Assembly (NCBI GenBank): GCA_019828565.1
Contig: JAHDYR010000002.1
Location: 310,001 to 374,000 of the forward strand
Direction: 5' to 3'
DNA length: 64,000 bases
Source of the DNA: Carpediemonas membranifera BICM
Taxonomy: Eukaryota; Protista; Fornicata
Positions 1,460 through 62,353 of the stretch are shown one piece after another (the first letter of the stretch is position 1; each line of letters opens with the position of its first letter). Below the pieces are notes generated by a model. That model saw only the letters and a list, made by a program, of their open reading frames with translations, was not told the origin of the DNA and did no database searches. A program made the position numbers and the translations under genes.

Positions 1460-1485
1460 ATTAAAATGTCAAAACATCTCTTTTT

Positions 1486-15851: not shown

Positions 15852-15898
15852 ATGGATCTAAAGGAGAATTTCAGTGATTTTTGGTTTACTAAGTGAGT

Positions 15899-24891: not shown

Positions 24892-24965
24892 TGACTTAAA
24901 GTCAAGTTTTGTCCTTGACTTTAAGTCACAAAAACTTGACTTGAAGTCAAGGAATTGACAGTATG
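24892..24965 (-). repeat. Right TIR of element B
   Basis: Ends ...GGAATTGACAGTATG. Confidence 0.95.
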
Positions 24966-34854: not shown

Positions 34855-34876
34855 ATGAATGTATATGTGCATGTCT

Positions 34877-35298
34877 GGGCCTCAGCGCTGTCGTTCAGGC
34901 CAATCCACGTTTGTGGATCCGTGCAGTTTATGGCTTATCGACCGGACATCTCCTGAACTGAGCGCCAGGGGGGCGGAGGTGGCGTTGGCGTGGGGCGTGG
35001 AGGCGCTGGGGGCGGGGGTGGCGTTGATATTGGGCAATTACATAAAGTGCACGGTGCTTGGAATTTCATTCCAACCTCAAAATGGCGGGAAAGCATTATT
35101 GGAAGGAACTAGTGGCAGCTATGCGGTTCTTTATACTGCAAAAGCAACCAGCTGTCGTCAAAAAGCGCGCCATCTACCATCAATAACCAACATCTGCGTT
35201 GCACTCCACTGTTCTCGGTCGTTAATGCACAAAATCACTAAACAACATCAGAAAGGAACAAAAGATAGATACTATAGACGTCCGTTTACCTATTCAGC
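34877..35298 (+). repeat. Module R copy 1; other copies ~36694-37267, 38570-39144, 40447-40908 and inverted ~47487-47960, 49523-50042
   Basis: Near-identical ~0.4-0.55 kb noncoding block with an ATCCAC/GTGGAT hairpin, a G-tract, and TAAAGTGC followed by a TTGGAAT/ATTCCAA hairpin. Confidence 0.9.
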
Positions 35299-36674: not shown

Positions 36675-37639
36675 TCAGAGAGAGTGATGTGGTTAAATGG
36701 ATTGCAAATGAGTCTTTTTAATGTCTCACCACCTGTTTGGGCCTCAGCGCTGTCGTTCAGGCCAATCCACGTTTGTGGATCCGTGCAGTTTATGGCTTAT
36801 CGACCGGACATCTCCTGAACTGAGCGCCAGGGGGCGGAGGTGGCGTTGGCGTGGGGCGTGGAGGCGCTGGGGGCGGGGGTGGCGTTGATATTGGGCAATT
36901 ACATAAAGTGCACGGTGCTTGGAATTTCATTCCAACCTCAAAATGGCGGGAAAGCATTATTGGAAGGAACTAGTGGCAGCTATGCGGTTCTTTATACTGC
37001 AAAAGCAACCAGCTGTCGTCAAAAGCGCGCCATCTACCATCAATAACCAACATCTGCGTTGCACTCCACTGTTCTCGGTCGTTAATGCACAAAATCACTA
37101 AACAACATCAGAAAGGAACAAAAGATAGATACTATAGACGTCCGTTTACCTATTCAGCCACTAAACAACATCAAAAGGACTGTTCATACGTTATTAAACA
37201 TTGCTTGCTACTTCTGTTTCATCTTATTGTCGTTTACAGCTGTGTTGTCCTCAACAAATGCCAAGACAGATCAACGAGGCGTTCGCGGCTTCCCGTTGAA
37301 GACTTGCCATTGCCAGAGAGAGTGCCATGCCTGGCACGTCTCTCTTCTTGTCTGCCGCGTGAAGGAATCGACCAGGCTGGATTCATGTGCAGCTTATGCA
37401 GCAATGGACACTCTGGAGTCAGAACTGCATTTGCAGCAGCTTATTGCTGCTATTGAGCTTACTTGTGGCCCTGTCCCATCAGAAAGAAACAACAGACAGG
37501 CCCGAAAGATCGCCGCGGTCATTTCTGGTGAGTTTGACAGAGCATTCGACCGTTTCTTGCGCGATCTCTTCGCCGACAGCCCGTCTATCATGAAGAGCTA
37601 GATCTCCTGGCGGAGATTCCCCAAGAGCCCATTGAAGAT

Positions 37640-38572
37640 GTGCCTGTCGCGGTAGGAGAAACCGCCAAGCCTGCATCCAAGCTTCAGCCCAAGACCACCA
37701 AGTCTGCGAAGAAGAAGGTGCAGACAAAGAAGCTGAGACAGCTGGCGCCGCGACGCGCTGGTACGCCTGCCCCGACACAACAGCAGGTCATCGTACCACT
37801 CAAGAACCTCAGCCGCCAGGAAGAGACAAGCCTTGAAACGTGGATTCGCAGCGTGCCGAAAAACTCTGCCATTACCATCGATATCTCTGGGATGGATGGT
37901 TTCAACGCCAGTGAGTCGACCCTTCACGAGCTGGAACACTCATTCCAGGAGAACAACGTCCGAGTTATTCGGGCCTGGATTGCTTACCAGCTTTGTCTCT
38001 ACGACTGTTTGTCAAGCCAGAAGATTAAGTATAACGAAAACGTGGCCCCCAGCGACGCCCTGCTCTCAGTGGCTCTTCAGCAGCAGAGGATCTTTGTCCA
38101 GGCGAACAAGCAAGGTGCACTTTCCACACGCCTTAACATAACGAAGACCCCCTTCTACAACAACGTTGTGGAGCGTCTGAAACTGATGGGTGAGACAGAA
38201 AGCATGATGTCAAAGTTCCACAACATCATTGGTGTCATCATCATCCACTTCGCCGACTTCACTTCCTTGCTGAAGAACCGAATGATCCCGAAGGATAACG
38301 ATACAGTCAGGGGCTTGAGCACCCTCATTGTTCACAGTCATCTGTGCATGGTTCACTCAACGGCGAAAGATATCCGTCCTGAGATCTACAATGCTCTGAC
38401 GACAAGCAGTACATTCCCGCCAGACCTTATGGCGTTTGCAAGAATGGCATTTGGTCTCGGACAAACCGCGGCGGTGACCCATGAGTCGCCCGAAAAGCAG
38501 AAGCATGCGGACAACACAATAGAGGATGATTCAGAGATCGAGACAAGTGGTAAGAGGGTGAGGACTGAGTAA
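37640..38572 (+). CDS. Hypothetical protein, copy 1 (true start uncertain)
   Basis: 310-aa ORF with a basic N-terminal region. Confidence 0.6.
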   Translation: MPVAVGETAKPASKLQPKTTKSAKKKVQTKKLRQLAPRRAGTPAPTQQQVIVPLKNLSRQEETSLETWIRSVPKNSAITIDISGMDGFNASESTLHELEHSFQENNVRVIRAWIAYQLCLYDCLSSQKIKYNENVAPSDALLSVALQQQRIFVQANKQGALSTRLNITKTPFYNNVVERLKLMGETESMMSKFHNIIGVIIIHFADFTSLLKNRMIPKDNDTVRGLSTLIVHSHLCMVHSTAKDIRPEIYNALTTSSTFPPDLMAFARMAFGLGQTAAVTHESPEKQKHADNTIEDDSEIETSGKRVRTE

Positions 38573-39516
38573 ATGGATTGCAAATGAGTCTTTTTAATGT
38601 CTCACCACCTGTTTGGGCCTCAGCGCTGTCGTTCAGGCCAATCCACGTTTGTGGATCCGTGCAGTTTATGGCTTATCGACCGGACATCTCCTGAACTGAG
38701 CGCCAGGGGGGCGGAGGTGGCGTTGGCGTGGGGCGTGGAGGCGCTGGGGGCGGGGGTGGCGTTGATATTGGGCAATTACATAAAGTGCACGGTGCTTGGA
38801 ATTTCATTCCAACCTCAAAATGGCGGGAAAGCATTATTGGAAGGAACTAGTGGCAGCTATGCGGTTCTTTATACTGCAAAAGCAACCAGCTGTCGTCAAA
38901 AGCGCGCCATCTACCATCAATAACCAACATCTGCGTTGCACTCCACTGTTCTCGGTCGTTAATGCACAAAATCACTAAACAACATCAGAAAGGAACAAAA
39001 GATAGATACTATAGACGTCCGTTTACCTATTCAGCCACTAAACAACATCAAAAGGACTGTTCATACGTTATTAAACATTGCTTGCTACTTCTGTTTCATC
39101 TTATTGTCGTTTACAGCTGTGTTGTCCTCAACAAATGCCAAGACAGATCAACGAGGCGTTCGCGGCTTCCCGTTGAAGACTTGCCATTGCCAGAGAGAGT
39201 GCCATGCCTGGCACGTCTCTCTTCTTGTCTGCCGCGTGAAGGAATCGACCAGGCTGGATTCATGTGCAGCTTATGCAGCAATGGACACTCTGGAGTCAGA
39301 ACTGCATTTGCAGCAGCTTATTGCTGCTATTGAGCTTACTTGTGGCCCTGTCCCATCAGAAAGAAACAACAGACAGGCCCGAAAGATCGCCGCGGTCATT
39401 TCTGGTGAGTTTGACAGAGCATTCGACCGTTTCTTGCGCGATCTCTTCGCCGACAGCCCGTCTATCATGAAGAGCTAGATCTCCTGGCGGAGATTCCCCA
39501 AGAGCCCATTGAAGAT

Positions 39517-40449
39517 GTGCCTGTCGCGGTAGGAGAAACCGCCAAGCCTGCATCCAAGCTTCAGCCCAAGACCACCAAGTCTGCGAAGAAGAAGGTGCAG
39601 ACAAAGAAGCTGAGACAGCTGGCGCCGCGACGCGCTGGTACGCCTGCCCCGACACAACAGCAGGTCATCGTACCACTCAAGAACCTCAGCCGCCAGGAAG
39701 AGACAAGCCTTGAAACGTGGATTCGCAGCGTGCCGAAAAACTCTGCCATTACCATCGATATCTCTGGGATGGATGGTTTCAACGCCAGTGAGTCGACCCT
39801 TCACGAGCTGGAACACTCATTCCAGGAGAACAACGTCCGAGTTATTCGGGCCTGGATTGCTTACCAGCTTTGTCTCTACGACTGTTTGTCAAGCCAGAAG
39901 ATTAAGTATAACGAAAACGTGGCCCCCAGCGACGCCCTGCTCTCAGTGGCTCTTCAGCAGCAGAGGATCTTTGTCCAGGCGAACAAGCAAGGTGCACTTT
40001 CCACACGCCTTAACATAACGAAGACCCCCTTCTACAACAACGTTGTGGAGCGTCTGAAACTGATGGGTGAGACAGAAAGCATGATGTCAAAGTTCCACAA
40101 CATCATTGGTGTCATCATCATCCACTTCGCCGACTTCACTTCCTTGCTGAAGAACCGAATGATCCCGAAGGATAACGATACAGTCAGGGGCTTGAGCACC
40201 CTCATTGTTCACAGTCATCTGTGCATGGTTCACTCAACGGCGAAAGATATCCGTCCTGAGATCTACAATGCTCTGACGACAAGCAGTACATTCCCGCCAG
40301 ACCTTATGGCGTTTGCAAGAATGGCATTTGGTCTCGGACAAACCGCGGCGGTGACCCATGAGTCGCCCGAAAAGCAGAAGCATGCGGACAACACAATAGA
40401 GGATGATTCAGAGATCGAGACAAGTGGTAAGAGGGTGAGGACTGAGTAA
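39517..40449 (+). CDS. Hypothetical protein, copy 2
   Basis: Identical to copy 1. Confidence 0.6.
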   Translation: MPVAVGETAKPASKLQPKTTKSAKKKVQTKKLRQLAPRRAGTPAPTQQQVIVPLKNLSRQEETSLETWIRSVPKNSAITIDISGMDGFNASESTLHELEHSFQENNVRVIRAWIAYQLCLYDCLSSQKIKYNENVAPSDALLSVALQQQRIFVQANKQGALSTRLNITKTPFYNNVVERLKLMGETESMMSKFHNIIGVIIIHFADFTSLLKNRMIPKDNDTVRGLSTLIVHSHLCMVHSTAKDIRPEIYNALTTSSTFPPDLMAFARMAFGLGQTAAVTHESPEKQKHADNTIEDDSEIETSGKRVRTE

Positions 40450-41022
40450 ATGGATTGCAAATGAGTCTTTTTAATGTCTCACCACCTGTTTGGGCCTCAG
40501 CGCTGTCGTTCAGGCCAATCCACGTTTGTGGATCCGTGCAGTTTATGGCTTATCGACCGGACATCTCCTGAACTGAGCGCCAGGGGGCGGAGGTGGCGTT
40601 GGCGTGGGGCGTGGAGGCGCTGGGGGCGGGGGTGGCGTTGATATTGGGCAATTACATAAAGTGCACGGTGCTTGGAATTTCATTCCAACCTCAAAATGGC
40701 GGGAAAGCATTATTGGAAGGAACTAGTGGCAGCTATGCGGTTCTTTATACTGCAAAAGCAACCAGCTGTCGTCAAAAGCGCGCCATCTACCATCAATAAC
40801 CAACATCTGCGTTGCACTCCACTGTTCTCGGTCGTTAATGCACAAAATCACTAAACAACATCAAAAGGACTGTTCATACGTTATTAAACATTGCTTGCTA
40901 CTTCTGTTACATCTCCTTAGGACATTTACTTCTGATTCTGTTTCTGCTCTCTCTTCTCCAGCACCTCTGCCATCTCGAGACCTGTCAGCAGCATTGATCT
41001 CATTCCTGCATCACAGAAAGTA

Positions 41023-42327
41023 TCAATCTCTTTTCGTCCGCTCAATCATTGCAATAAACTGCCTGTGCAGTCTTCCGCGCACACCTTTTGCGCACTTATT
41101 GGTGCTCACCTGCCTGTATCCCTTGTGGCATGTGTCACAGCTGACGTTCTCGCGTCCATGAAGGTCTCTACCACACACTATGCAGCGCCGATAGAAGACT
41201 TGACCCTCAAACCCTCGCTGACAGCAGTCGGTCAGTCTCTTTCGCTGAGCTGCAGACAGGGTGACCTCTTCTGTATCATCTAACAGAAGCGGACTCGGCT
41301 TGGCGACGCATTCATGCACGCGCATGATGACCTTGAGCTTGTCAAGACATTCGGCAGCAGTGGGACGCTTCGCAGGGTCGAAGTGGAGCATCTGCATTGC
41401 CAGGTCGTACAGGCTGAGACAAGTAGGTGGCGTGGTGCCGCGAATCGGGAGCTCAGAGTTCACGTTGACACACTCGAGGCAATCTTTGAAATGTGTCTGT
41501 GCCTGAGGTGACAACTGCAACTGCCCACCATAGAATTGGCACCAGTTCAGCAAGCTACCAAGCTTCAGCATCTTTTTCTTCTTCTTGTTGTCGATCTGCG
41601 CCATGTTTGCACCCATGTCAGTCACCTTCGCGGCAAAGGGGGACTTAGAGAGACCGTTAACGAGCATCATAATGACAATACCGCAAGAGTAAATGTCCGA
41701 TGCAGGTGTCACGACATAAGAAGTGACGGAAAGAGCCCCTGCCGTCATGCGCGCGAGCTTGGAGGTGTCGCGTGCAGCAGTAATCACTGAGCGCGAGACA
41801 AGGTACTCGTAGAACAGCTCTGGGGGCAAATATCCATGGGTGCCGCGATACTCGGATGCGAATCTCAGTTGTATGGCCCACCTGTCGTCGCCATTAGCCG
41901 GCTTCCTCATTGCAGACCCAAAATCAATGAGGTATCCCTTCTGACTCTTGCTGAAGAGGAAGTTGTCTGGCTTAATATCGCAATGGACAACCCCGTGGTC
42001 ATGCATGTAGCATACTGCCTGCAGCAGATGCGAAACATAGCGGAACTGCACGCTGGAGTGAGCCTTGCAGATGCCAGCGAAGGGGGTACAGTTGACCAAA
42101 GGAGCCATGAAGGCTGGATCACGGTCGACAAAACCTGTATCGACGACAGGGAGGACATGCGGACTGTCCTTGAGCGCTAGCAGGGTGGGAACCTCCATAC
42201 CATAATGCTCATCAACTTTGATCACGACCTGCAGCTTTTCAGGTTCAAAGTCGTGCAGATATTGTCTACTATTACCAGGTAAGGAAGTAAGTCGCTCCAG
42301 CTTGTCGCTATCTAGCTCGAACACCAT
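41023..42327 (-). CDS. Ser/Thr protein kinase with C-terminal Cys cluster
   Basis: VVIK, HCDIKPDNFL, DFG, GTHGYLPPE, DIYSCG and RPTAAECL. Confidence 0.9.
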   Translation of the reverse strand: MVFELDSDKLERLTSLPGNSRQYLHDFEPEKLQVVIKVDEHYGMEVPTLLALKDSPHVLPVVDTGFVDRDPAFMAPLVNCTPFAGICKAHSSVQFRYVSHLLQAVCYMHDHGVVHCDIKPDNFLFSKSQKGYLIDFGSAMRKPANGDDRWAIQLRFASEYRGTHGYLPPELFYEYLVSRSVITAARDTSKLARMTAGALSVTSYVVTPASDIYSCGIVIMMLVNGLSKSPFAAKVTDMGANMAQIDNKKKKKMLKLGSLLNWCQFYGGQLQLSPQAQTHFKDCLECVNVNSELPIRGTTPPTCLSLYDLAMQMLHFDPAKRPTAAECLDKLKVIMRVHECVAKPSPLLLDDTEEVTLSAAQRKRLTDCCQRGFEGQVFYRRCIVCGRDLHGRENVSCDTCHKGYRQVSTNKCAKGVRGRLHRQFIAMIERTKRD

Positions 42328-44921: not shown

Positions 44922-46641
44922 ATGCTAGACTTGTTCACTTGGCTGGAAGAAGCCACTGAGTTCGAGAAGAAGGAGCTAATGACCAAGATCAATGCAGCTG
45001 CAAGCGCTAAAGGCAAATGCGACGTCCTTCGCGCGCTTTTGCTGCCTAGGCGCGATTTACTCGCTACTGTGATCAAGGAACGTACGTTACTGAGCGAAAT
45101 TGTTTACACAGGTGTTAATCTCAAGCGTATTGCCACGTTCTTCCGCCTCACGCGCCAGGAGACAGAAGATATGAAGAAGGACCTTAAGGCGCAGTTTATG
45201 GCGACGATGAAATTGAATGAGGGTGAAAGGGTCACAGGGGAACACAAGAAAACACTGAAGCAGGTCCTCGGCGGGGATACCTTCACGCACCTGTACGACG
45301 GCGAGGTGGAGAGCGCGCGTATTCGGGTGAAGAAGAGCATTCGTGAGGCTAGAATGAAGACAAACGCTAGGCTTGAGTGTGAACTCGCGAAGGAGGAGGA
45401 CGAGGACATCAGGGATTGTACTCGGGTTCAGATGATGAAGCTGGCCGATGAGGAAGACCGAAAGGAGTTGGAAAAGGAGATGGAATACACGCGCGAGTCC
45501 AAGTATGACGTGGTATGGGAGCGAGTGTACGATGAGATCTGCGGTACTCGTCGTGTGCGGGCCCGCAGGGATAACGCCCCCTGTCCCGGCGAGGATCACG
45601 CCGACCACGTGCTTCAGCGCTATCTCTGGGCCGACCAGATCGATACTCAGGCGCTTACTGGCGAGAAGACGTTGACCACGAGACTCCCTGCTGAAGCTCG
45701 AGTCGTACGTCGCGTGACAGCCAGTCTGATCTCTGCTCAGAAGACGGAGATCCAATCTCTCAAGGAGCAGGTCGAGCGGCTGAAGAAGCAGGTGACTGAC
45801 GAGAGAAGAGACCACTTTCTTGAGTGCAGGCGTATCCATCATGAGCATGACGTTGGGTACCTTGCTTCCTGCGATGTTTCGTTCGCCGCCAGCCCCATGC
45901 CGCCACAGTCTGGCACGCTCTCCAGGACTTCCTGCCCCCGACGCGCTACGAACGAGCCCGAGGCCTCCATGTCTGTGAAGCGCAAGGCCCTCTTCATCAC
46001 GCCCGAGAAGGCCAGGCCTGAGGACTCAGAGGAGGAGACAGAGGAGGAGCAGGAGGAGGCGAAGGAGAAGAGGGGTGAGGCAGAAGAGGAGACGGTGAAC
46101 ACATGCGACGCCTGCATCCAGACTGAGCCGGAGACTCAGACTCGCATCACCTCTGAGGCCGCGGTGCAGACGTGCATCAACGTGGAGGCTCTCACGACTA
46201 ACTGTACCGCGATTCATGTCAAGAGTGACGGCAACTGCGTTGCATATTGTCTCCAAGCCATTGAGTTGGGTGGCCGAGTTGATGGCGACTTCGAAAAAGT
46301 GGCAGCGTGGCCTCTGCCAGTCAGTGAAGGCCAAGTACTGGTCTAAGAAGAATGTCACGGAGCGTAGCCTGACAGATCCGGACTCCGGCTACTATAACTC
46401 GAACGCCATCCGAGTCTGGGCAAGGAAGCAGAAGCGGAACATCCTTGTTGTCCAGTCATACGACGGATACAACGGCATGCAAGGCATCTCCGCCATCTTA
46501 TACCTGTTTGATGGCACCACCATGCTTGCACCCGATACAGACTTGTGGGGGTTGACAGATAATTTCGCTATTGTCATCGAAGGCGATCCGGCTCACGCCA
46601 CGCTGTACCAGAAGAAGTGCGAGGTCGTTGAGATTGAATAA
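44922..46641 (+). CDS. Coiled-coil + OTU-like protein (+1 A frameshift near 46296)
   Basis: First ~400 aa nearly identical to 18880-20757. OTU domain VKSDGNCVAYCL...AHATLY. Confidence 0.75.
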
Positions 46642-47402: not shown

Positions 47403-47587
47403 ATGGTTTGATGTGTTCGGTTGTCTTTCATCTGTGAAATGAGAACAGGCGTGAGTGTCATGGACACAGATGGCCCGGACAGCGTTGCCTCCGTCTTGGC
47501 ATTTGTTGAGGACAACACAGCTGTAAACGACAATAAGATGAAACAGAAGTAGCAAGCAATGTTTAATAACGTATGAACAGTCCTTTT

Positions 47588-49522
47588 GATGTTGTTTAGT
47601 GATTTTTGTGCATTAACGACCGAGAACAGTGGAGTGCAACGCAGATGTTGGTTATTGATGGTAGATGGCGCGCTTTTGACGACAGCTGGTTGCTTTTGCA
47701 GTATAAAGAACCGCATAGCTGCCACTAGTTCCTTCCAATAATGCTTTCCCGCCATTTTGAGGTTGGAATGAAATTCCAAGCACCGTGCACTTTATGTAAT
47801 TGCCCAATATCAACGCCACCCCCGCCCCCAGCGCCTCCACGCCCCACGCCAACGCCACCTCCGCCCCCTGGCGCTCAGTTCAGGAGATGTCCGGTCGATA
47901 AGCCATAAACTGCACGGATCCACAAACGTGGATTGGCCTGAACGACAGCGCTGAGGCCCAGACATGCACATATACATTCATTTATTCCTGTCTCGCTCTC
48001 TTGCCTGTCTGATCGCGACGTTTGACCCACTCAAATGCCTCATCTGTGAGGGTAGACAGAGACGTCGCGAGTATTCCCAGTCCTAACCTTCCGAATCAAC
48101 GTTCGGCAAGGATCTTTGGGTGTCGTCGTTGAGGTACGACGGCAAGCCCACTCTGAGGTCTCGCATGAGCCCCCGCACACGATGCAACGTCCTGACAGGA
48201 CAAGCGGGGGGTCATGCGTTCTGGCCATAGCTAGCTGGTCCACCTGGCTAGCAGTCAGTGTGCGGGACATGAGCGTACCGCGCGTCTTGCCCGTGTCTTC
48301 GGGCCTGGGCCTCGGCTCATCCAGGTCTCCGACGTCCGAAGTCGTCATCGTTGCCTGCTCCAAAGTGGTGGGCTCCGGCTGAGACCTGACACCTGGCAGC
48401 CTGAGCATGGTCTTACGGCCGCCGCTACGCAGCCTCTCAATCTCATCCTCAAGAATGCTGACCTTCTTCGTCAGAGCATGATGTTCACTTGTCGCAACGA
48501 GCGACACTGGCGACTTAAGCAGCGCGATGAACGCCCTGACGTTATCGTGCAATGGAACCGAGAAGGCCTGGGCCAAGCTCTCGACCAGCTCCAGGACCTT
48601 GGGCAGGGTGTCGGGCTCAAGCTCATTGTGAGCTGCGCGGTTCCGGTACTCAACGAGATCACGAATGATCTTGGCATGGGCTTTGTTGTACGCCGCTCGA
48701 TTGGACATCTCACGAAGGATTCTTGATGAATCCACGTCCTGTTCGAGCTCTTTGCCGAGGAGGTCCTTCTCGGTGCTATTGGGCTTGCACCCGGGGTTAA
48801 ATGCAGGCGAGGCCAAGATCTTCCGCATCCAAGGGACCATCATGGCGAGCAGCTGAAGAACTCGCGCATTATCGCCAAGGATGCGGAGCTGCTCATCGTT
48901 CCATGGTGAAATGAACAGGTGATGATCTTGTCGAGCGGATGATTGCCCTTTGAGAGGTGCTTGGCGATGCTTAGCGCGATATCGGTCCATCCACAACTGT
49001 GGATGACGAGCAATTTAAGGTAGGTGCCGCATCAGTCAATAACCCCGTGCTATCGTGCAATAGAACACAGTTAACACTGCTTTCCATGCGCAGCAACACA
49101 GCCTGTGGCGGAGAGACGCCCGGTATGGACGACACCAGGTGATCCACAAACGTGGATTGGCCAATTACGTCGGCCCCTCCCATCCCGCATCCCTCAGGAT
49201 ACGCAAGCACAAGCTCTCTCCCTGCAGCACCTCTCTGGCGCTCTCTAAAATCGTCGTATAGCGTAAACAGAATGTGCCGCATCAGTCATTCGTTCATTTT
49301 ATTCCACTTATCACTCTTGGTCATCCTCCTCATCACTCACCTCCTCGCGGATACTGACATCATCACGAGCCTCGTCATCCGCGAGTGTCAATGGCTCTGT
49401 AATAGCGCGGGCAGCGTTGGTATACTCACCGTTGAACTGTCGCTGGCCTCTCTGAATGCGAGGAAAGCAATTCACGCACACCGGAACACGACGAGAAGGA
49501 CGCTTCAACATGTCAGTTCCAG
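47588..49522 (-). repeat. Inverted duplication of 33315-35250 (PHD gene 3' fragment, HEPN gene, module R)
   Basis: Identical translations on the opposite strand; the HEPN copy has a +1 G near 48050. Confidence 0.92.
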
Positions 49523-50275
49523 CCTCCGTCTTGGCATTTGTTGAGGACAACACAGCTGTAAACGACAATAAGATGAAACAGAAGTAGCAAGCAATGTTTA
49601 ATAACGTATGAACAGTCCTTTTTGATGTTGTTTAGTGATTTTTGTGCATTAACGACCGAGAACAGTGGAGTGCAACGCAGATGTTGGTTATTGATGGTAG
49701 ATGGCGCGCTTTTGACGACAGCTGGTTGCTTTTGCAGTATAAAGAACCGCATAGCTGCCACTAGTTCCTTCCAATAATGCTTTCCCGCCATTTTGAGGTT
49801 GGAATGAAATTCCAAGCACCGTGCACTTTATGTAATTGCCCAATATCAACGCCACCCCCGCCCCCCAGCGCCTCCACGCCCCACGCCAACGCCACCTCCG
49901 CCCCCCTGGCGCTCAGTTCAGGAGATGTCCGGTCGATAAGCCATAAACTGCACGGATCCACAAACGTGGATTGGCCTGAACGACAGCGCTGAGGCCCAAA
50001 CAGGTGGTGAGACATTAAAAAGACTCATTTGCAATCCATTTACTCAGTCCTCACCCTCTTACCACTTGTCTCGATCTCTGAATCATCCTCTATTGTGTTG
50101 TCCGCATGCTTCTGCTTTTCGGGCGACTCTACATGAGTCACCCTTGCAGTGGACGTGGTTGTGGAGCACCCCCAGTGTCTCCACGTCCGCCACCAGCGCC
50201 AGATCCGCCACCATGCCCTACATCAGCACATTTGTGTATTTACTTTTGTAAATTTGTCCTATTGCTATTGAAGCA

Positions 50276-52843
50276 ATGCGTTTCGAGAACTGGGAAGTCG
50301 TCATCACCTATGGGGCGGACAGTTCTCTTGGATCTATCATCACCGCTGTCTTAGACGAGTTTCTGCTCCGAAACCGCGACAAATCGTTTCGTTTAGACAG
50401 CAAGGAGCAGTGCTTGCGCATTCTCCGAGATTTCCTGACGTCATGTCCACTGAGGGTGACACATAGTGATGCTACGTTACGTAGTGCAGTCGTTAATGCT
50501 GATTGGAGCGCATTGATGAGGAATCACAGCACTGCTCATGTGACTGTTACGCGAGTCGACAACGAGGCGAAGACGAAGAGCCTATACACGGCCATGGCAA
50601 TTATCTGTGCCGTCGAGTTAGGGAAGAATCGCTACGACCGACTCCGCCATGCATTTGTTTCAATGGCCTCCGACATGGGAGTTCGCCTTGGAATTCACAC
50701 TCCACCGGTGGTAGACAGTCTCCAGAATCTTGGGTATGACCTGCTGTCCATCCCAGCCATACGATCTGTTATATCAGACCCAACACTGATCGAGGACGTC
50801 AACGCGTTCACTCCTGAGCAGCCCGATGTCTCTGGGCGTGATGGGGTGTCTAACCAAGAGCTTCAATGTCAAGCAGGAGCCGGTTTCACGCGTAGCGTGG
50901 AAGTCGCGGAGGCTTTTTACGTCCTATATGACCCAACCACCCACACCGACCTGCAAGAGACTCTCGATGAACACGACTGCCTCTTCGCTCACCACTTCGA
51001 GAAGATATCGGGGGAGTCACGGCTATACATTTCGCATGATGATCCATCCAAGCTGCCGGAGATTCAGAGATTATGCCGGAACATGGGCATCATTCCGCGT
51101 GGAACAAAGAAATCTCACCGGATGGTGATCAGCGCTCTGTCCTATGACCCTGTCGCCCAGATTAAGTTCATGCTGAAGTTCCCCGACCGAGTTCAGCGCG
51201 ATATCAAGTCAAGCAAGTTCGTTCAATCCGTCACTATTAACCCGGAGAGCCGACAGGAGGCTTATGGTCTTGAGATGCTCCTATGGTTTGATGGATATCG
51301 GGCCGACTGTACGGCGGTCAAATATCGCATAATTGATCGCGAGGGAGCAGCCCTACCACAGAAGATTACCCCACCCATGACGCTTCTTACATTTCAGGGC
51401 ACAGAGAAGCTCATTCCTTCGTTCTTTGATGATGTACAGCGGCTAATGAACAAGCTCATTGGTATCCCCTTCGCATGTGGTGACAGTTCGTTGCTCCCAC
51501 GCAGCCGTGTTGTCATCAGCCTGCTCGGGATCTGCGGCGATCACAAAGCGTTGCAGATTGTTAGTGGCGTCAAGCGGGGACGATACTACCGCTCTCCATT
51601 CTCCTCCCTACACATGGGAAAGGTCGCAAGCGACCCGTTTGCCAATCGTTGCGATCGCTGGACAATCGCAGATAGCATCCGTCTTCGTGACGCTGGTGGC
51701 GTGAAAGACATGACACGGTTTGGGTCCCGCGATGGTCACCGAGATGTCTGCTGTCTGACCTATGCCAACGAGATAGATGGCCCACTTCACGTGCTCACAA
51801 AGTACGCTGATGTCACGTTCATTCCACCTGTCATGCATGTGAGTCACTATCTTATGAAGGACTTCTGGACGCTGCTTGGCCTTGTCAAGGTTCAACACGC
51901 TGGTCAGAACGTGCACACACTTGAGCAGATTGAAAAGCTGTTCACGCGGACAACTGGCTGCAACGAGCAGAGCTGGAACAGACGAAAGCTCGCGACACTA
52001 GTCAACGAGCACCTTGAGGAGTTTGACCAGTCACTCCAGCCCTTCATACTCCTTACAGCCAAGTTACAGGCGTTGTATTACTCCTCTGACCACGTGACAC
52101 ACCAGACAATCGCTTTCCATCACGCGGCGTCCTTTTCTACGTTCATTATGTTCCATGTCTTGACGTTGTTCTATGACCTTCCATCGAGTCGCTCCTCGGT
52201 TGCTACGACGCTCAATGATGGTCTCAGACTGACTTACTCTCCCAAGTTTACCGGCTCGCTATATCTGAATGCAGTGGTGTCAGTTCTGCCCAAGGTTCAC
52301 TCGAAACTGCGGCTTCCGATGTTCTATTTGCTTGAGGAGTACTTCGAACGTGATTTCCTCATCATCAATGCCCAGTTGCGAGTGGACAAGCATCGATCTT
52401 GGGTTCTCGGCTTCCTGGCTCAGAAGACAATGGTCGGTCGTGTCCTTGCTCACTACACCCGCCGTGGCTCATCGAGAAAGCATGGTATGGTGTTGCCGAT
52501 TGCAAGGCAGTGTAAGTCTGTCACATTCTGCTCGTGTCTATTTGATGCCGACCGGTGTGCCGCCTGGAGAAATCGTCTATTAACTAAGGTACCCAACTGG
52601 GATAGGGAGGCGAGCCAACAGTCGCTGAATGCGCTGTTTAGTGGATGGGTCAAGGGTATCTGTGAGGAGCCGGAGGAGATCCGGGAACTCATCACTGTTG
52701 ACGAGACAGCCAAGACGATTTGTGTAAGGACGGCGGACAGTGGTCTGGATGAGACTCTCTGCATCTGCAATCTGTGCAACAGTGAGCAGCGAGCGGAGGA
52801 GCTGATGAGGAGGACTGGGCACAATCTTCGCCCGAGAAGATAG
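50276..52843 (+). CDS. Transposase of element C (855 aa, intact)
   Basis: Motifs WFDG, ICGDHKAL, PPVMH, RTTGCNEQ, LEEYFERDF and LCICNLC. Confidence 0.8.
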   Translation: MRFENWEVVITYGADSSLGSIITAVLDEFLLRNRDKSFRLDSKEQCLRILRDFLTSCPLRVTHSDATLRSAVVNADWSALMRNHSTAHVTVTRVDNEAKTKSLYTAMAIICAVELGKNRYDRLRHAFVSMASDMGVRLGIHTPPVVDSLQNLGYDLLSIPAIRSVISDPTLIEDVNAFTPEQPDVSGRDGVSNQELQCQAGAGFTRSVEVAEAFYVLYDPTTHTDLQETLDEHDCLFAHHFEKISGESRLYISHDDPSKLPEIQRLCRNMGIIPRGTKKSHRMVISALSYDPVAQIKFMLKFPDRVQRDIKSSKFVQSVTINPESRQEAYGLEMLLWFDGYRADCTAVKYRIIDREGAALPQKITPPMTLLTFQGTEKLIPSFFDDVQRLMNKLIGIPFACGDSSLLPRSRVVISLLGICGDHKALQIVSGVKRGRYYRSPFSSLHMGKVASDPFANRCDRWTIADSIRLRDAGGVKDMTRFGSRDGHRDVCCLTYANEIDGPLHVLTKYADVTFIPPVMHVSHYLMKDFWTLLGLVKVQHAGQNVHTLEQIEKLFTRTTGCNEQSWNRRKLATLVNEHLEEFDQSLQPFILLTAKLQALYYSSDHVTHQTIAFHHAASFSTFIMFHVLTLFYDLPSSRSSVATTLNDGLRLTYSPKFTGSLYLNAVVSVLPKVHSKLRLPMFYLLEEYFERDFLIINAQLRVDKHRSWVLGFLAQKTMVGRVLAHYTRRGSSRKHGMVLPIARQCKSVTFCSCLFDADRCAAWRNRLLTKVPNWDREASQQSLNALFSGWVKGICEEPEEIRELITVDETAKTICVRTADSGLDETLCICNLCNSEQRAEELMRRTGHNLRPRR

Positions 52844-53864
52844 ATAGATGGATAATCGGAGTATGTATATAAAGGGTTCTTTATGTTTACACTATCTTCA
52901 CCAATCTACAGTCAATTACGTCTATTGCGAGCGAAGAACAGCTTTCAGTAAGAAATTTGAGGCAACTGTCAGGTAATTCTTAGTAACGTCGTCGGCAATG
53001 GCGTAATAGTCATCCATTTCAGTCAAGTGACTCAGCTTAACGCGCATTTGCTTGATTTCGGCGATAAACTCGGCCCGCTTCATTCGTTTGTCATAAAGTG
53101 CATTCCGGCCATATCACAAGTTTTCTTCATCACAAGGCACGCACGGGGGTGTAAGCGGGACCGAGGCTACCACCACAGCCTCTTCTGAGCCGATGGATAC
53201 CTTTTGTTGATTTGCCAGAATTGACCAAACGACGAGGAATGCTTGATATGCCGCGTATGGATGATTTGAAGAAGAACTGAAGGTGAAAGACAAAGATCAT
53301 AGAAATATACATCATGCGGCTCACTTTTTGGAGACATTGGAGGTAAATTAGCTTTTAGGATCGTTTTTCGTTTGCCAGGCAAAGTTTTGAGTGTTTTCTC
53401 GAGAATACTCGATGCCGTATGCAATCTTGCTGCTATTTGATGCAGAACAAAGGTTGTTATGTGACACAGATGTTCTCACTTGCTTTCGGCCTTCTTTGTT
53501 GGCGAGCAAAAGCAAACTTCTTTGGGAGCAATTCCCAAAAATCGCATCTTTACGCACCCAGGAAATTTTATCTCGGCATACTGGACCAGTGGGGGAGGCA
53601 CGGCAGTCTATCCCGACCCTAGATGAACCATGAGACAGTTTTTCGACGAGAGTTTGTGCGATGCCACTGACTTCGCGAGTGAGGGTCTTCAGCATGTTGT
53701 ACGGATGTCTAAACGATGCCTTGTGCAAGTGCAAGGCGTAATACGCTGTAGTTTAATTGTTTGAGCGCGTTCATTTTTTCTTGCAATCGTCCTTTTTTCA
53801 TGTATTCCGGGACTTATTCCGGGACTTAAAGTCCCGGTTAAAGTACCAGAAAAAACAGCATGAA

Positions 53865-56335: not shown

Positions 56336-58150
56336 TTGGTGCGGACAAATACTGCAAGTCTGAGAAAAGGTTTACGACTCTGTCCACGCCTACTAGGCCG
56401 GGTGAGCATACATAATCGAACCAACGAGAGTGATATATCGTCGGCCAGGTATACTCGTAAATGGACCAACCTGAAGAAGAACGAAGGCTTAATGGGCAAA
56501 TCAGGCAAGCCAGCAAAAGCCGAGGCAAAGAAGAAAGCCGCTATCCGTCAAAAAGCTGCAGAAATGAAGTCAATGAGCAGCGAAACACAGAGCGAGCTCC
56601 GTGAACTCAAGCAGATGGTTCAAAAGGCCATGAACAACCCCACAACGCCTGCTCCGAAGCAGAGACAAGACAAAAGCAAGCAATGGAAGAGCAAGCACGA
56701 TGATCGCCAGTTCTCTGCGCCTGCGAGGCAACAAGGTCGCCACGGGCCTCAGATCCGGGACGCCACGTCATTCCAGACGCCCATCATAACAGAACCATAC
56801 AACCCACTCGAGGAGAAGTCCATGACTCTCATGCAACAGCTTTCACTCACTTCCAACGCCAATGGCTCTGCTCCTGCTGCGTTTAATACGCTGACTTCCC
56901 TCGCCGACGTAGACATCAAATCCTTCGTAGCATCCAAGACATATACTTCCAAGCAGCGCCTTCTAGTGAACGAGCGGCCCGACCAGCCCGGATCTGAGGG
57001 CTTCGGCTTCCTCGGAATCCAGGGAGGTGACGAGATCTGGCTCGCCTCAGGCCAACCGTTCACTGCTGTCCTCACGGGCGTCCAGGGCTCGGGCAAGTCA
57101 TACTCTTCTCTCGTCTTCCTCGAGAACATTCTCCTCAACGCACCGCCCATTTCTCATGGCAGATCGAGTGGCAGACCAACACTTGTTCTTCACTTTGATC
57201 GGGCAAAATCTACGTATTGCGAGGCTATCTCTCTGGCTCTGGAGACCCAGTTCGGTGCTGAGGTCGAGATTCCACGCGTTACAGTTCTCGTGTCACCCGA
57301 CAACTTCCTCGAGCGGTCACAACACCATTACAAGAGCATCCCAAACGTCAACGTCGAACCTCTTCTCTTCTCATTCGACGATATCGACGCACGCGACCTC
57401 AACACTCTGATGGGCCTTGAAGACGGAGCCCATAAGCCACTCTACGCCGGCGCCGTCATGACGGTCCTACGCCGTTTCCAGCGCACAGGCCAGCATCCCA
57501 AATGGCAAGACTTCCTCGGCCTTATTGAGCACATAGACCTCAACTTTTCCCAATCTCAGATGCTTCAGCAGAGAATTGATATGGTCAGTTCCATCATGAG
57601 GGAAAGCACGAGCAATGAGCAGTATTCCGACTACAGGACGCTAGACGCTGTCTTTGACGAGAGCGACGTGATTATTGTGGACCTCACGGATAGCCTGATA
57701 GACCCATCTTTCGCAGGCACGCTTTTCTCGATCATGATGCAACATTTCATCTCGATTCCCGGGCCTGGAAAGACTATTTTCCTTGATGAAGCGCACAAAT
57801 ACCTCACTTCTGCTCCTCTGTGCGAAGTGATGACCACAACAATCAGACAACAAAGGCATCTTGGGACAAGAATGCTCGTAAGCACGCAGTCGCCAGAAAC
57901 TGTACCAGCTGAGGTGCTCGAGCTCGCCAACATTGTTATCCTGCACGCGTTCCATTCCCCCGCTTGGGCCAGATATATATGTGAGCATGTTAATCTCAAC
58001 ATGACACCTCAGCAGCTTTTGAACGCCCTCGAGCTGCTACCACCAGGTAATGGGGTCTTCTTTGAGAGCACGGGTAGGATGTGCGGTGAAATCATGCAGT
58101 TTAGGCGCAGGTTGACGAGAGATTGCGGCAGTAGCAAGGTAAGCACTTGA
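56336..58150 (+). CDS. HerA/FtsK/VirB4-like P-loop ATPase (probable start ~56492)
   Basis: Walker A GVQGSGKS, Walker B IFLDEAH, RQQRHLG and STQSP. Confidence 0.85.
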   Translation: MVRTNTASLRKGLRLCPRLLGRVSIHNRTNESDISSARYTRKWTNLKKNEGLMGKSGKPAKAEAKKKAAIRQKAAEMKSMSSETQSELRELKQMVQKAMNNPTTPAPKQRQDKSKQWKSKHDDRQFSAPARQQGRHGPQIRDATSFQTPIITEPYNPLEEKSMTLMQQLSLTSNANGSAPAAFNTLTSLADVDIKSFVASKTYTSKQRLLVNERPDQPGSEGFGFLGIQGGDEIWLASGQPFTAVLTGVQGSGKSYSSLVFLENILLNAPPISHGRSSGRPTLVLHFDRAKSTYCEAISLALETQFGAEVEIPRVTVLVSPDNFLERSQHHYKSIPNVNVEPLLFSFDDIDARDLNTLMGLEDGAHKPLYAGAVMTVLRRFQRTGQHPKWQDFLGLIEHIDLNFSQSQMLQQRIDMVSSIMRESTSNEQYSDYRTLDAVFDESDVIIVDLTDSLIDPSFAGTLFSIMMQHFISIPGPGKTIFLDEAHKYLTSAPLCEVMTTTIRQQRHLGTRMLVSTQSPETVPAEVLELANIVILHAFHSPAWARYICEHVNLNMTPQQLLNALELLPPGNGVFFESTGRMCGEIMQFRRRLTRDCGSSKVST

Positions 58151-58279: not shown

Positions 58280-61200
58280 TCATGACACGTAAATCTGAAC
58301 ATCCGGAGGGGCGGGTAAGTAGCCCATCAAAACACCACCATGGCTATCAACAAACTCCATCGTAATGCTTCTAACCGCCTGCAGAGCAGACCGACCGATG
58401 TCACCCAGGAAACCAACCTTCGTTAAACTGTACTGGAGCCGAGTCCCAGATTGGACCATCGGCAGGATAACATCGCCGTGGTTGCGTGGGTTGTCGTTCA
58501 CTGAAACACGCGCGGTTCTTGCTTGGGCGCCGTCAAACTTGGCATCAGTGGGTATGAAAGTAAACCCGTGGAGCCTGACTGGGCTGGGGAATGAGTACCG
58601 TACTTTGCGGCCCTCCGCGGCAGTCTCGACCGCAGAGGCTGGGAACCTGTGTGGTTTCATTGTAAACGCTGGTCCGTTGGAAACATTAAGAGACTTTCCC
58701 TCAAGAACCATCATATCATGGAACTGGTGGATCGCTCCAACATCAGCCGGCTGGGCTACACCGTAGACTTGGAGTCGACCTATACGGAGGCAGCAGTCGG
58801 CCGGGCAGTCCTCGGGAAGTTGGGCAACTACTGATAAAAGTTGGCCCCGGACCGGTTTCATGGGGAGTGAGAGGCGGGAGCCGGGGGTCGTGTCGGTGGG
58901 CAGGCTGAAGCGGCCGACTGGAGTGAGGTTGGAGACGTCAACGCCTGCGAATACAGAGAAAGAGGGGACGCATTGGGACTCGAACCCACGACCATCGACA
59001 ATAAGATGGATCCCGGTAATCGTAGCCATCGAGCAAAGGCAGATACAGAACTCGACAACCCTAAGCCCTGGCGGCGCATCCCAACCACATGAAACAGGCA
59101 CCTGATCCGGCGTACAAAGGACAACTTCAGGTGGGAACACAGCTTCAGCTCTGGTCGGCACAGCGTGTAGCAGGTCGGCTTCAGGGAATAGCGAGAGAAG
59201 GGTGAGGCCACGTGTCTTGCTAATGTCCGATGGAAGCATGGTGCGTACAGAGCAAAGGAGTGAGCGAATGGCACGAGCTGCTTTCATGGTCAGATCAGAG
59301 CTGTTGCTCTCAGCAGCCGAGAGCATTCTGATCTCGTCGATGAGGTGGCACTGCTCGTCAATCACCGGCTTGCACTGCAAACAGACATGGACCCTAGTCT
59401 CGAAAAGTCCACGCTCGGGTACTGGGACAGGAGATCTGCTCATGCAGCTGGAGCATACCGGTTGGTGGCATCTGGCACAGCAGGCGAGCTTGGCCTTATT
59501 CCCACAAAGGGCACAGATCTTGGTTGAGACTGCTGGCGGGGCTTCATGAGTGAGTGGGATCTTCTTATTGGGAGAAACAGTGGCTGGGTCGATATGAATC
59601 AATGCAAGGACAGTGTCTCTGTCCGTTGGAGTGATTCCTGCCCTGAGTCTCTCGTGTTCCAGCCTCAACGCCTCAGTCATGCTGAGTACCGACTCGGCGT
59701 CGTCCCAAATGGAGTCGGGGTCTGGATGGGTGGCAGTCACACCGGATCCAAGGAGGAGGGCTAGCTTCTCATTGACAGAGTCGGTCGAGTGGGTTGGGTC
59801 GAGTTCGAGGCAACGTCTAGGGTTGTAAAGGCGCTTAGTAAGCGTGTCGACGTATGCTTGCACAAGCTTGGGCGCTACTCGAGCTTTTTCTACTGGCGGT
59901 GAGTCTACCCTAGGTGCGGGAGGGGCTGGCCTCGCGGTTGACTCCAGAGGGTCTTCACACGGAGTGGCCTCGAGGAACGGGACGGTGTGGTCGAGTGTGG
60001 GACGTTGGCCAGGGTTGACTGTCTGCTGCTTCGACCGTCGGAGGAAGCTGAGTACATCGCGTGTGAGTGCTTGAGAATTTGCTCTGGATTCGGCGGTGAC
60101 CTTGGGAACAGACCCAAAGACGGTGATAGGGCCGAGCACCATGGTTGTAAATCCCGTAGAAGAGAGCGAGAGCCTGACCACACGTGTCAATACGTCGGAC
60201 CTGACCGGTGCCTCAGGGAAAATGAGGTCTGGTGAGGCTCGAGTCAGTGGGAACGTGAGGACAGTGCCTGGGGCGACAGAAGGGAGAAGCACGCCCTCAT
60301 GGGTGACCTTCATGCTATCAATAGTCGGCCCGAGACATATATCCATGACCGACGGCTGAGCGTCTGTCGGGCCGAGCACAGTGAGTGTCAGATGAGTTGG
60401 GACACATGGGGCAGAGAGGTAAGCGATGACCTCGACCACGTCATGGCCGTGGGAGACGACGAAGGGGGTGTCACCCATGCCTGAAGAGGGGTCGAGGAGG
60501 AAAGCGGTGCATACGGCGGCGTCTGCCTCGCCTCGGTGGGGTGGGATGGCTTTGAGGACGCAGCCTGGGGCTCTAGAGACTGTGATGAACTCCGTATCCC
60601 CCACGAGTGAGGGGAAGTGACGTAGGAGTCGGTTTCCCGTGAAACACTCAACACTAACCTGCCGCTCGCCGTCCTTGAGAATGTTCTGGTACTTTCTCTT
60701 GGCACTGATGAGGTATCTGTGCCTGGCAGCCCCGGCCTTGTCTGAATAACCCCGTATATCACTACTGTAAACAGCAGGAGAGTTTGTATAAATCTCACTG
60801 AAAGTGTCCCCGTTTTCGACGAAACCAGACGCCAGGGCGGACAGCAGAGCCTTGGGCAGACTCTTCTCGACCTGATCCAGGGTCGACCCGAGCATCGGCC
60901 AGCCGTTGGGGTGGGCCTGCGTGTTCGTGGGCGTCGTGTTGAGCGGCAGACCCAGCACGCGACACTGCTCGGCTAGAATCTGCATGCTGATGTAAAAAGT
61001 GCAGAGGTTGGTCCGATCGAGCGAGTCCTGGCAGTTGAAGCGTTGGACAGTGTTCTGTGTCGAGTCTGCGCGGACATCGAGGGTGGTACCGTCGGGCGCG
61101 TACATAAATGCGGGGGTGCGTGCGTCAGGTTTGTTAGACTTGAACGTGACGATGCCTGTGGTGACAGAATCACACAGGGCGCCGAACTTAGCCCAGAGCC

Positions 61201-62353
61201 CTTCCACTGCGACGTTCCGGTCCAAATCCTTGGTAATCTGGTGCCAATCAAAGAAGGCGAGGTTGACACTCAACCCACTCTGTTTCTGGACATGTTGCAG
61301 CGAGGCGGTGTATCCCTCGTTGAGCAGGGTTTCCATCTTGTCACTCTTACTTATATTGAGTTTGAGCAGGCTGAGACCGCTGAGAGTGACGTTGTGACCA
61401 TACTTTGTCAGGTAGTCGCCCCAATACTCGCACGTCCCAGCAAAGGGTTCGTCGGACCTGATCTTGATTCTGGGAACCTTGACGCCGTCTGTGACCTTGG
61501 GCGGTGGTTGGGTCCACCATAAAGGGACAGTGCCCCTGCGCCAAAAGTAGGAAGAGAACCTGACTGCACTGGCGCTAGAAGTCTTGGTAAGAAGGATGAG
61601 CTCGCATTCGATCTCGTTACCTGGGATGTGGCGGTCGTTGAGGCCTCGAGAGTGGAAACGGAGGCCGGGGTTGGAGCTGAATCGCTTGGACAGCATGAGG
61701 AGCGTGGCGTCTGCGTCGCCAATGGGTACGTCCTCAGTGTACACTAGACCTTGCATGAGAAGAACGGGCCATAGCCTCACCCCAGCCCGAGCGAAGGACT
61801 GGCACAGAAACTCGTTCCACACAAGATTATGGTCGTATTCCGATAAATCCCGGGAAGAAGGGAAGGGGTGGGTCAGGTCGGCCGTCTCGCAAAAGAAGTG
61901 GTGTCTGTTGAGGTCAAAGGCCTTGAGGTGCTCGATAGAGAGCATGTCTTGGTGGGACTTGCTCAGCGGAGAGGAAAGCTCGATCGTAAGCCACTGGACG
62001 TTGTTCACAGAGTAGATGGAGTGGCCGCCAGGGAGCATGGCGGCTGTGGAGACGTCGTCGGCGTAGCATAGGAGGCCTACGTCTGCGATGGGGAGGTAGC
62101 CGATGATTGCAGGGGTAACAATCTTGCGGATGATGCCCTTCTTGCCCTTCTTGTCCATGGCGTACTTCTCTCTGATGAAAGTAAGTGCCTCGTCCTCGTT
62201 ATTGAACGTATCAATGCCCCGCTTGCCAGAAAACAAGAGCTCGCCGGTTGACGGGTCAATCGAAAAGACCTGAGTATCACTGCGCCAGCATAGCGTACTG
62301 ATTATAAAATAGGACTTGTTGTATAGTTGAACGATGCAGTGGCGCGAACGCAT
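58280..62353 (-). CDS. SAC-domain phosphoinositide phosphatase (SAC9-like architecture, FYVE-like Cys finger)
   Basis: Catalytic RFNCQDSLDRTN (CX5RT), RFHSRG..GNEIECE and RRGTVPLWW. Confidence 0.9.
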   Translation of the reverse strand: MRSRHCIVQLYNKSYFIISTLCWRSDTQVFSIDPSTGELLFSGKRGIDTFNNEDEALTFIREKYAMDKKGKKGIIRKIVTPAIIGYLPIADVGLLCYADDVSTAAMLPGGHSIYSVNNVQWLTIELSSPLSKSHQDMLSIEHLKAFDLNRHHFFCETADLTHPFPSSRDLSEYDHNLVWNEFLCQSFARAGVRLWPVLLMQGLVYTEDVPIGDADATLLMLSKRFSSNPGLRFHSRGLNDRHIPGNEIECELILLTKTSSASAVRFSSYFWRRGTVPLWWTQPPPKVTDGVKVPRIKIRSDEPFAGTCEYWGDYLTKYGHNVTLSGLSLLKLNISKSDKMETLLNEGYTASLQHVQKQSGLSVNLAFFDWHQITKDLDRNVAVEGLWAKFGALCDSVTTGIVTFKSNKPDARTPAFMYAPDGTTLDVRADSTQNTVQRFNCQDSLDRTNLCTFYISMQILAEQCRVLGLPLNTTPTNTQAHPNGWPMLGSTLDQVEKSLPKALLSALASGFVENGDTFSEIYTNSPAVYSSDIRGYSDKAGAARHRYLISAKRKYQNILKDGERQVSVECFTGNRLLRHFPSLVGDTEFITVSRAPGCVLKAIPPHRGEADAAVCTAFLLDPSSGMGDTPFVVSHGHDVVEVIAYLSAPCVPTHLTLTVLGPTDAQPSVMDICLGPTIDSMKVTHEGVLLPSVAPGTVLTFPLTRASPDLIFPEAPVRSDVLTRVVRLSLSSTGFTTMVLGPITVFGSVPKVTAESRANSQALTRDVLSFLRRSKQQTVNPGQRPTLDHTVPFLEATPCEDPLESTARPAPPAPRVDSPPVEKARVAPKLVQAYVDTLTKRLYNPRRCLELDPTHSTDSVNEKLALLLGSGVTATHPDPDSIWDDAESVLSMTEALRLEHERLRAGITPTDRDTVLALIHIDPATVSPNKKIPLTHEAPPAVSTKICALCGNKAKLACCARCHQPVCSSCMSRSPVPVPERGLFETRVHVCLQCKPVIDEQCHLIDEIRMLSAAESNSSDLTMKAARAIRSLLCSVRTMLPSDISKTRGLTLLSLFPEADLLHAVPTRAEAVFPPEVVLCTPDQVPVSCGWDAPPGLRVVEFCICLCSMATITGIHLIVDGRGFESQCVPSFSVFAGVDVSNLTPVGRFSLPTDTTPGSRLSLPMKPVRGQLLSVVAQLPEDCPADCCLRIGRLQVYGVAQPADVGAIHQFHDMMVLEGKSLNVSNGPAFTMKPHRFPASAVETAAEGRKVRYSFPSPVRLHGFTFIPTDAKFDGAQARTARVSVNDNPRNHGDVILPMVQSGTRLQYSLTKVGFLGDIGRSALQAVRSITMEFVDSHGGVLMGYLPAPPDVQIYVS

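Follow-up and report, generated by a model that had tools for sequence, protein, structure and literature searches.

To which transposase lineage belongs the product of an open reading frame (ORF) at positions 50276-52843 in a 64,000-nt window of the genome of Carpediemonas membranifera BICM, a free-living protist? The window is the whole stretch of DNA analysed (assembly GCA_019828565.1, contig JAHDYR010000002.1, positions 310,001-374,000); coordinates are positions within it, and the L-numbered loci (L002-L014) are comparison loci outside it, with L004 coming from an assembly unrelated to the Carpediemonas window. The ORF product and its relatives are currently annotated as hypothetical proteins and Pfam does not see them. 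We are confident that the ORF encodes an aspartate-aspartate-glutamate (DDE) transposase of the CACTA/EnSpm-Mirage-Chapaev-Transib (CMCT) clade, and that it belongs to large, autonomous and recently active DNA transposons with terminal inverted repeats (TIRs). This assignment follows from fold matches to RAG1, the enzyme that shuffles antibody genes, to RAG1-like proteins (RAG1L) and to Transib, together with the invariant residues D339, D422 and E691 at RNase H positions.

A preliminary description, made from the DNA letters, had recognised three transposase copies with shared motifs in the window. This holds: the ORF and the two other copies are 26-30% identical (tblastn E ~1e-37), and WFD/WLD, GDH/ADH, PPxMH, RTxGCNEQ, EExFER and a C-terminal CIC/CCIC are found in all three. 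Compared with intact copies at other genomic sites, the copies of elements A and C differ by two single-base indels each, which may be real or leftover long-read errors; both copies were used as separate pieces in the searches. The window copy of element B has an extra Ile codon at 52359-52361, just past EExFERDF, compared with both full-length database copies, either a real variant or an assembly slip. An intact protein of 854 aa is recorded as KAG9391892.1.

Sequence searches showed how isolated the family is. The Pfam library holds Plavaka, CACTA and RAG1 models, and no Pfam transposase family matched the three window copies or 17 members at E<=1 (HMMER); single-sequence and profile searches of the PDB gave chance matches only. 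A phmmer search over 1.84 billion representative proteins yielded 17 relatives. All come from C. membranifera or from environmental contigs, the family thus being present in metagenomes as well, with no named fungal, plant or animal relative among them. The metagenome contigs belong to PPCM01, ERZ23495434, SRR4018426 and SRR5112542. No relative was found in viral or prokaryotic genome collections, and word-index profile searches gave fewer matches than phmmer, none of them more distant. Within the family the split is deep, with 23-60% identity in the core, and the tree does not separate environmental from Carpediemonas members but mixes them; the family is hence older than one species.

Predicted structure provided the link to known transposases. 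The AlphaFold model of the window protein has a predicted local distance difference test score (pLDDT) of 72, and that of the core of a 28%-identical member has a pLDDT of 84.5 and a predicted template modelling score (pTM) of 0.87, with template modelling (TM) scores of up to 0.48. Foldseek searches against the PDB returned 48 matches at E<=0.001 for each model, all of them RAG1, amphioxus RAG1L or HzTransib, with best E values of 6.5e-8 for the window protein and 9.8e-9 for the core of the other member. No viral structure matched at this threshold, and no EnSpm, Chapaev or Plavaka structure was among the PDB fold matches. As RAG1, RAG1L and Transib are the sole clade members among the matches, the search places the family in the clade without ranking the lineages within it. 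It therefore bears out the RAG1/Transib-type DDE transposase of the preliminary description, and gives no support to a specific Chapaev-or-Transib assignment.

The catalytic layout agrees with the predicted fold. Across an alignment of 19 rows, D339, D422, H521, E687, E688, E691 and R692 are invariant, and the family also has a C-terminal HxC...CxC cluster. In the model, DSSP assigns D339 to the long first strand and D422 to the end of a later one, with E691 on a helix past the insertion, which is the RNase H arrangement. From spacing, E688 and E691 would correspond to RAG1 E959 and E962, and H521 to RAG1 H795. H795 is a named active-site residue of RAG1 (PMC7204232). The distance from the second Asp (D2) to the Glu is 269 residues in the window protein and 261-299 across the family, which is near the 253 residues of RAG1 and longer than the 206-214 of Transib (PMC1131882).

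The transposase genes lie in elements with matching ends and target site duplications (TSDs), as listed in Table 1. Element B has a 66-bp TIR at 86% identity and AA on both sides, with the transposase ORF 1,019 bp inside its right end, and it splits a gypsy pol gene, leaving the RNase H and integrase domains on the left and the chromodomain on the right. One end of element C lies at 9807, precisely where the flank ceases to match an uninterrupted copy of the same repeat. Two further complete elements come from outside the window, one of 8,568 bp in L002 with TSD TC and one of 11,629 bp in L004 with TSD GC inside another gypsy pol gene, so that sizes span 8.6-22 kb. All four complete elements (A, B, L002 and L004) have an exact flank match of 2 bp, not 3 bp, expected by chance at ~1.5e-5, and the duplications AA, GT, TC and GC show no sequence preference. 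In both elements that interrupt gypsy pol, the reading frame is continuous through the insertion point only if 2 (or 5) bases are ignored. Of 14 listed termini, 13 start CATRCTG and one CATGCAG; two of the 13 are single candidate ends on short contigs. The CATRCTG termini and 2-bp TSDs reported earlier are therefore confirmed. The heptamer itself occurs 29 times in the window against 18.4 expected, which is near chance; its enrichment was rejected as evidence, and the case rests on the TIR pairs.

CMCT lineages have CA..TG termini and TSDs of 2-5 bp, and PlavakaB has CATCA..TGATG termini with TSDs of 2-3 bp (PMC12730594); TSD length varies even inside Transib, 2-3 bp included (bioRxiv 10.64898/2026.08.26.747230). 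With 5'-CA..TG-3' ends, TIRs and a TSD within 2-5 bp, the present elements follow the rule of the clade, and the ends are not the unusual ones that they had been called. The contrast drawn earlier with CAC..GTG ends and 3-5 bp TSDs is right only for canonical Transib, Chapaev and EnSpm.

Some further features of the elements were noted. The TIRs (13130-13195, 31846-31891) contain internal palindromes and short repeats, with GACTT..AAGTC in both A and B, and are candidate transposase binding sites. Short, partly palindromic motifs recur inverted at gene boundaries inside elements (window 468-501 and 6100-6132; L004 5274-5329, 9651-9695 and 11707-11762; L005 3962-4000 and 9943-9981), possibly as element-specific promoter or 3'-end signals. 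The 34-bp inverted repeat 468-501/6100-6132 was rejected as a separate element, since another copy of the C family has the motif at the corresponding internal position. Element A carries 40-bp tandem arrays (21802-22289 and 22977-23196), also found in L006. Element B is rearranged internally (33315-35257, 36679-40914, 47581-50142), with 1,877-bp tandem units and near-identical inverted segments, and the L003 copy has another arrangement upstream of the transposase. In one environmental family the flanks at L007 3415-3420 and L010 3415-3420 agree in 5/6 bases, which hints at a target preference in that subfamily. Targeting of retroelements was rejected: gypsy elements and other repeats do contain insertions, yet only a small sample was available and the loci abound in repeats.

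The family departs from its known relatives in an apparently missing zinc site. Kojima defined the CMCT clade by D, D and E together with two Cys and three His residues, part of them in C(2)C and H(3-4)H motifs (PMC12730594), and four such Cys/His residues bind the ZnC2/ZnH2 zinc in RAG1L (PMC7204232). The third of the five, the His after the second Asp, is present as H521 in 19/19 rows. At the expected zinc places the alignment reads [SC]PF[ST] and YxHxxxxVxP. In place of C(2)C, the first Cys occurs in 6/18 rows and the second in 2/18, never together, and in place of H(3-4)H, which precedes the last Glu, the first His occurs in about half of the rows and the second in none (motif in 0/12). 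None of the 12 full-length members has a CxxC between D2 and the conserved His, and the window protein has none of the four zinc-ligand residues. With the register set by spacing, this looks like the loss of an ancestral site, and the insertion domain might fold without the ZnC2/ZnH2 zinc ion. RTxGCNEQ, which had been thought specific to the family, is indeed so in the form R-T-x-x-C-x-E, invariant in 19/19 rows and situated in a loop. Its position relative to the conserved His suggests that it corresponds to the RAG1 R848 region; the loop might take the place of the RAG1 R848 loop and help to position target DNA.

Several points weigh against this reading of the family. Identity to RAG1 is 9-15%, with an rmsd (root mean square deviation) of 8-16 Å, and TM-scores of 0.3-0.5 indicate a distant relationship. 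The clustering of D, D and E is judged from secondary-structure position in a predicted model. C(2)C and H(3-4)H, which all CMCT lineages are said to have, are absent in 12/12 full-length members, and the functions of the cargo genes described below rest on profile similarity, with weak OTU and HEPN calls. Because the family lacks these two defining motifs and does not agree with Transib, Chapaev, ESTA or PlavakaB, we file it as a probable CMCT-allied new lineage and not under a named family. The new lineage in the CMC/Transib group proposed earlier is thus probable, given the absence of Pfam or PDB sequence matches, the 17 relatives in 1.84 billion proteins and the family's own RTxxCxE motif; named lineages were compared by description and through Pfam models. 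The general kind, a CMCT cut-and-paste transposon with CA..TG ends and a short TSD, is already known, and the family may already have an entry in Repbase. Literature searches found no description of RAG1-fold transposases in Carpediemonas.

The strongest competing explanation, although an unlikely one, is a highly diverged member of a described CMCT lineage with 2-bp TSDs (PlavakaB, Mirage, ESTA, an EnSpm subgroup or Lanisha). The termini and TSDs of PlavakaB would suit it, the fast evolution of metamonad proteins (PMC8516963) could erase motifs, and some members do retain isolated Cys or His residues of the zinc motifs; yet complete zinc motifs are missing in 12/12, the TSD is not the TA of ESTA, the Pfam search of 17 members matched no transposase model, and phmmer turned up no named fungal, plant or animal relative. 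Membership of Chapaev/Chapaev3 or Transib proper is improbable. The top fold matches are to RAG1, RAG1L and Transib, but that ranking arises by default, as EnSpm, Chapaev and Plavaka structures are absent from the matches. TSD length is labile within Transib, and GDHK and PPxMH presumably resemble Chapaev motifs, but the CACAATG heptamer and the 5-bp TSD are missing, and the D2-to-Glu distance exceeds that of Transib. The specific tie to Chapaev made earlier finds no support at the N-terminus either: no Chapa or RING zinc finger is present, CRxC and HPxxF being absent in 12/12 members, whereas Chapaev has a Chapa zinc finger (CRxCG, HPxxFCxxC) with or without RING (PMC4411706).

Two further explanations are scarcely credible. 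Members of the P-element superfamily have 7-8 bp TSDs and a THAP domain, and although P transposase is the next fold match past the RAG1/Transib block (E 5e-3 and 1.5e-2) and the Drosophila P terminus, CATGATG, is one base off CATGCTG, RAG1 outscores it by five to six orders of magnitude, the elements have TSDs of 2 bp rather than 7-8 bp, and a THAP-type N-terminal CxxC is absent in 11/12 members. The ORF might instead be a passenger of elements moved otherwise, or the elements segmental duplications or assembly artefacts, as the tandem and inverted duplications inside B and the richness of the region in nested repeats could suggest; but every TIR-bounded element found, in two unrelated assemblies, has this transposase ORF, no other recombinase was seen inside the elements, and the junctions are base-exact with TSDs.

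The CMCT-allied family is recently active in C. membranifera. At least seven further annotated proteins of the B family are 98.7-99.8% identical, the same element ends recur with different flanks, and elements are nested within one another (L006, L014). By comparison with RAG1 and Transib, a dimer would pair the two TIRs, and the D-D-E metal centre would nick the DNA and cut the element out, with hairpins probably remaining on the donor flanks. Its 3' ends would then join target DNA with a 2-nt stagger, and fill-in would produce the 2-bp TSD. The elements, TSDs, copy identity and fold come from the present analysis, and this chemistry is borrowed from those relatives. The Carpediemonas host is reported to be without Ku70/Ku80 and DNA-PKcs (PMC8516963); donor sites would therefore need another repair route, and the activity of the elements in such a host poses the problem of how it closes excision sites.

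The elements carry cargo genes (Table 1). Distantly related elements in different genomes share SET-like, PHD-like and OTU-like families and one further cargo family, whereas only some elements have kinase, GNAT, RCC1 or weak HEPN-like genes. A 1.98-kb OTU-bearing segment of B is 97% identical to an inverted copy in A although the A and B transposases are 26-28% identical, hence cargo has been exchanged between subfamilies. The SET, PHD, OTU, kinase and GNAT products might act on chromatin and keep the element expressed or mobile; by analogy with what has been proposed for the TET/JBP cargo of fungal transposons, we hypothesise an anti-silencing role. The apparent loss of zinc ligands, the large element size, the shared cargo and the indels in copies A and C are points beyond the preliminary description.

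The PHD cargo was rejected as a relative of RAG2, whose PHD is not among the 60 best matches. In one element only, an RCC1-type beta-propeller gene (L005 1-2371) stands beside PHD-like cargo upstream of the transposase, a layout that echoes RAG2, but the propeller is not kelch. A further conserved cargo family (window 2-700, minus strand; L004 8643-9647; L005 7977-8957; L011 2091-3149) has an N-terminal CVCG...RH...C cluster and FSGHG...FAFC motifs, which are reminiscent of a caspase-like His-Cys dyad; it had no PDB sequence match.

Table 1. Positions of the transposases, catalytic residues, cargo genes and elements in the 64-kb window
Feature	Position	Strand	Evidence or remark
Transposase ORF of element B, 855 aa, intact	50276-52843	+	Fold match to RAG1/Transib
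Transposase of element A	15899-18474	+	Single-base insertions near 16212 and 18133 vs intact 857-aa copy P0011
Transposase of element C (start approximate)	6183-8900	-	Single-base indels near 7525 and 8745 vs open copy in L014
D339, first predicted catalytic Asp (WFDG), long first strand of RNase H core	51290-51292	+	D in 18/18 covering rows; DSSP strand 329-341
D422, second predicted catalytic Asp (GDHK), end of strand 411-421	51539-51541	+	18/18 rows; DSSP
H521 of PPxMH, putative equivalent of RAG1 H795	51836-51838	+	19/19 rows; equivalence from spacing
RTxGCNEQ motif, loop entering helix 562-582	51947-51970	+	R558, C562 and E564 in 19/19 rows; DSSP
E691 of EExFER, predicted catalytic Glu, helix 688-703	52346-52348	+	19/19 rows; D2-to-E 269 aa vs RAG1 253
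PHD-finger-like cargo of B, family common to A, L002, L004, L006, L012	32339-33526	+	Profile match KAT6A PHD, E 3.7e-8
Weak HEPN-like cargo of B, inverted duplicate 48040-48996	33841-34854	+	E 0.013, below Pfam cut-off
SET-domain-like cargo of B, family common to C, L004, L005, L006, L011	35290-36102	-	Profile match EHMT1, E 3.5e-10
Two identical 310-aa ORFs in 1,877-bp tandem units, cargo of B	37640-40449	+	
Protein kinase, cargo of B	41023-42327	-	Pfam Pkinase, E 2e-23
OTU-like cargo of B, in two frames	44922-46641	+	Weak, E 0.009
PHD-finger-like cargo of A	14679-15851	-	Profile similarity
OTU-like cargo of A (PGDGDC...H)	18880-20757	-	Profile similarity
Probable cargo of C: SET-like ORF in two frames (951-1459, +) and OTU-like ORF (1486-2448, -)	951-2448		
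Element B, 22,037 bp, in gypsy integrase gene	31826-53862	+	TIR pair and TSD
Left TIR of B, starts CATGCTG	31826-31891	+	TSD AA 31824-31825
Right TIR of B	53798-53862	-	TSD AA 53863-53864; same end, other flank in L003
Element A, 11,846 bp, 74-bp TIRs (13120-13193, 24892-24965)	13120-24965	+	TIR 99%; TSD GT
5' terminus of element C, CATACTG; other end outside window	9801-9807	-	Exact junction vs uninterrupted flank in L002; same end, other flanks in L014

The surroundings are rich in other repeats. Two gypsy-type long terminal repeat retrotransposons lie back to back (25297-28958, minus strand; 29069-31825/53863-54596, plus strand), the second with a chromodomain integrase and split by B. The 3.2-kb repeat at 9808-13043, interrupted by element C, is 99.5% identical to L002 1740-4975; it contains three ORFs with no Pfam match, adjoins a reverse transcriptase/integrase ORF in L002 and may be the gag part of a retroelement. 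Outside the elements, 56336-58150 (plus strand) encodes a 604-aa P-loop ATPase with weak HerA/VirB4-like matches (E 0.03), and an intronless host gene for a SAC9-type phosphoinositide phosphatase (58280-62353, minus strand) marks the return to ordinary genes.

The family would add a branch to the clade that gave rise to the antibody-gene recombinase, and it seems to work without a zinc site regarded as universal in that clade. With a 2-bp stagger instead of 5, a structure of its transposase would show what sets target spacing. Its elements mobilise 9-22 kb of DNA that includes a conserved chromatin-related gene set. A bolder version of the proposal, which we put forward tentatively and think possible rather than probable, is a deep-branching, zinc-free RAG1-fold lineage of superfamily rank, confined to anaerobic protists, that swaps its own chromatin-editing kit (SET methyltransferase, PHD reader, OTU deubiquitinase, GNAT acetyltransferase and kinase) in a host without Ku-dependent end joining. 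If so, it would serve as an outgroup in studies of RAG/Transib evolution and as a natural test of the roles of the ZnC2/ZnH2 site and the target loop.

Among known systems, the RAG1 core, ProtoRAG RAG1L and HzTransib share with the family the predicted fold, the D-D-E order, a long insertion between D2 and E, the active-site His, ExxE at the last catalytic residue and CA..TG ends, but differ in sequence and in having the ZnC2/ZnH2 ligands. Transib and RAG1L have a CACAATG-like heptamer plus nonamer and a canonical 5-bp TSD, where the family has CATRCTG and 2 bp; Transib elements measure 3-4 kb, and unlike RAG systems the family elements show no RAG2-like kelch gene. PlavakaB of fungi resembles the family in its CAT-starting termini, its 2-bp TSDs of free sequence and its elements of several kb able to carry epigenetic cargo. 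It differs in that CATCA and CATRCTG diverge at positions 4-5, that the family has no Pfam transposase match, that Plavaka has both C(2)C and H(3-4)H, that its cargo is TET/JBP instead of SET/PHD/OTU-like, and that the host here is a metamonad. Chapaev and Chapaev3 share the clade-level catalytic layout, whereas the Chapa or RING finger, the termini, the TSD length and the multi-gene cargo separate them from the family. EnSpm/CACTA, Mirage, ESTA and Lanisha, compared by description, likewise have CA..TG ends and a TSD within 2-5 bp, and the ER after the family's catalytic Glu presumably resembles EnSpm; the family differs from them in its missing Pfam match and zinc motifs, and from the TA of ESTA in its AA, GT, TC and GC duplications. 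Finally, the cargo-bearing KDZ and TET+ transposons of fungi have unrelated ends (Kyakuja with a 7-bp TSD and no TIR) and a different cargo set, but they too are large DNA transposons with chromatin- or DNA-modifying genes that have been read as anti-silencing.

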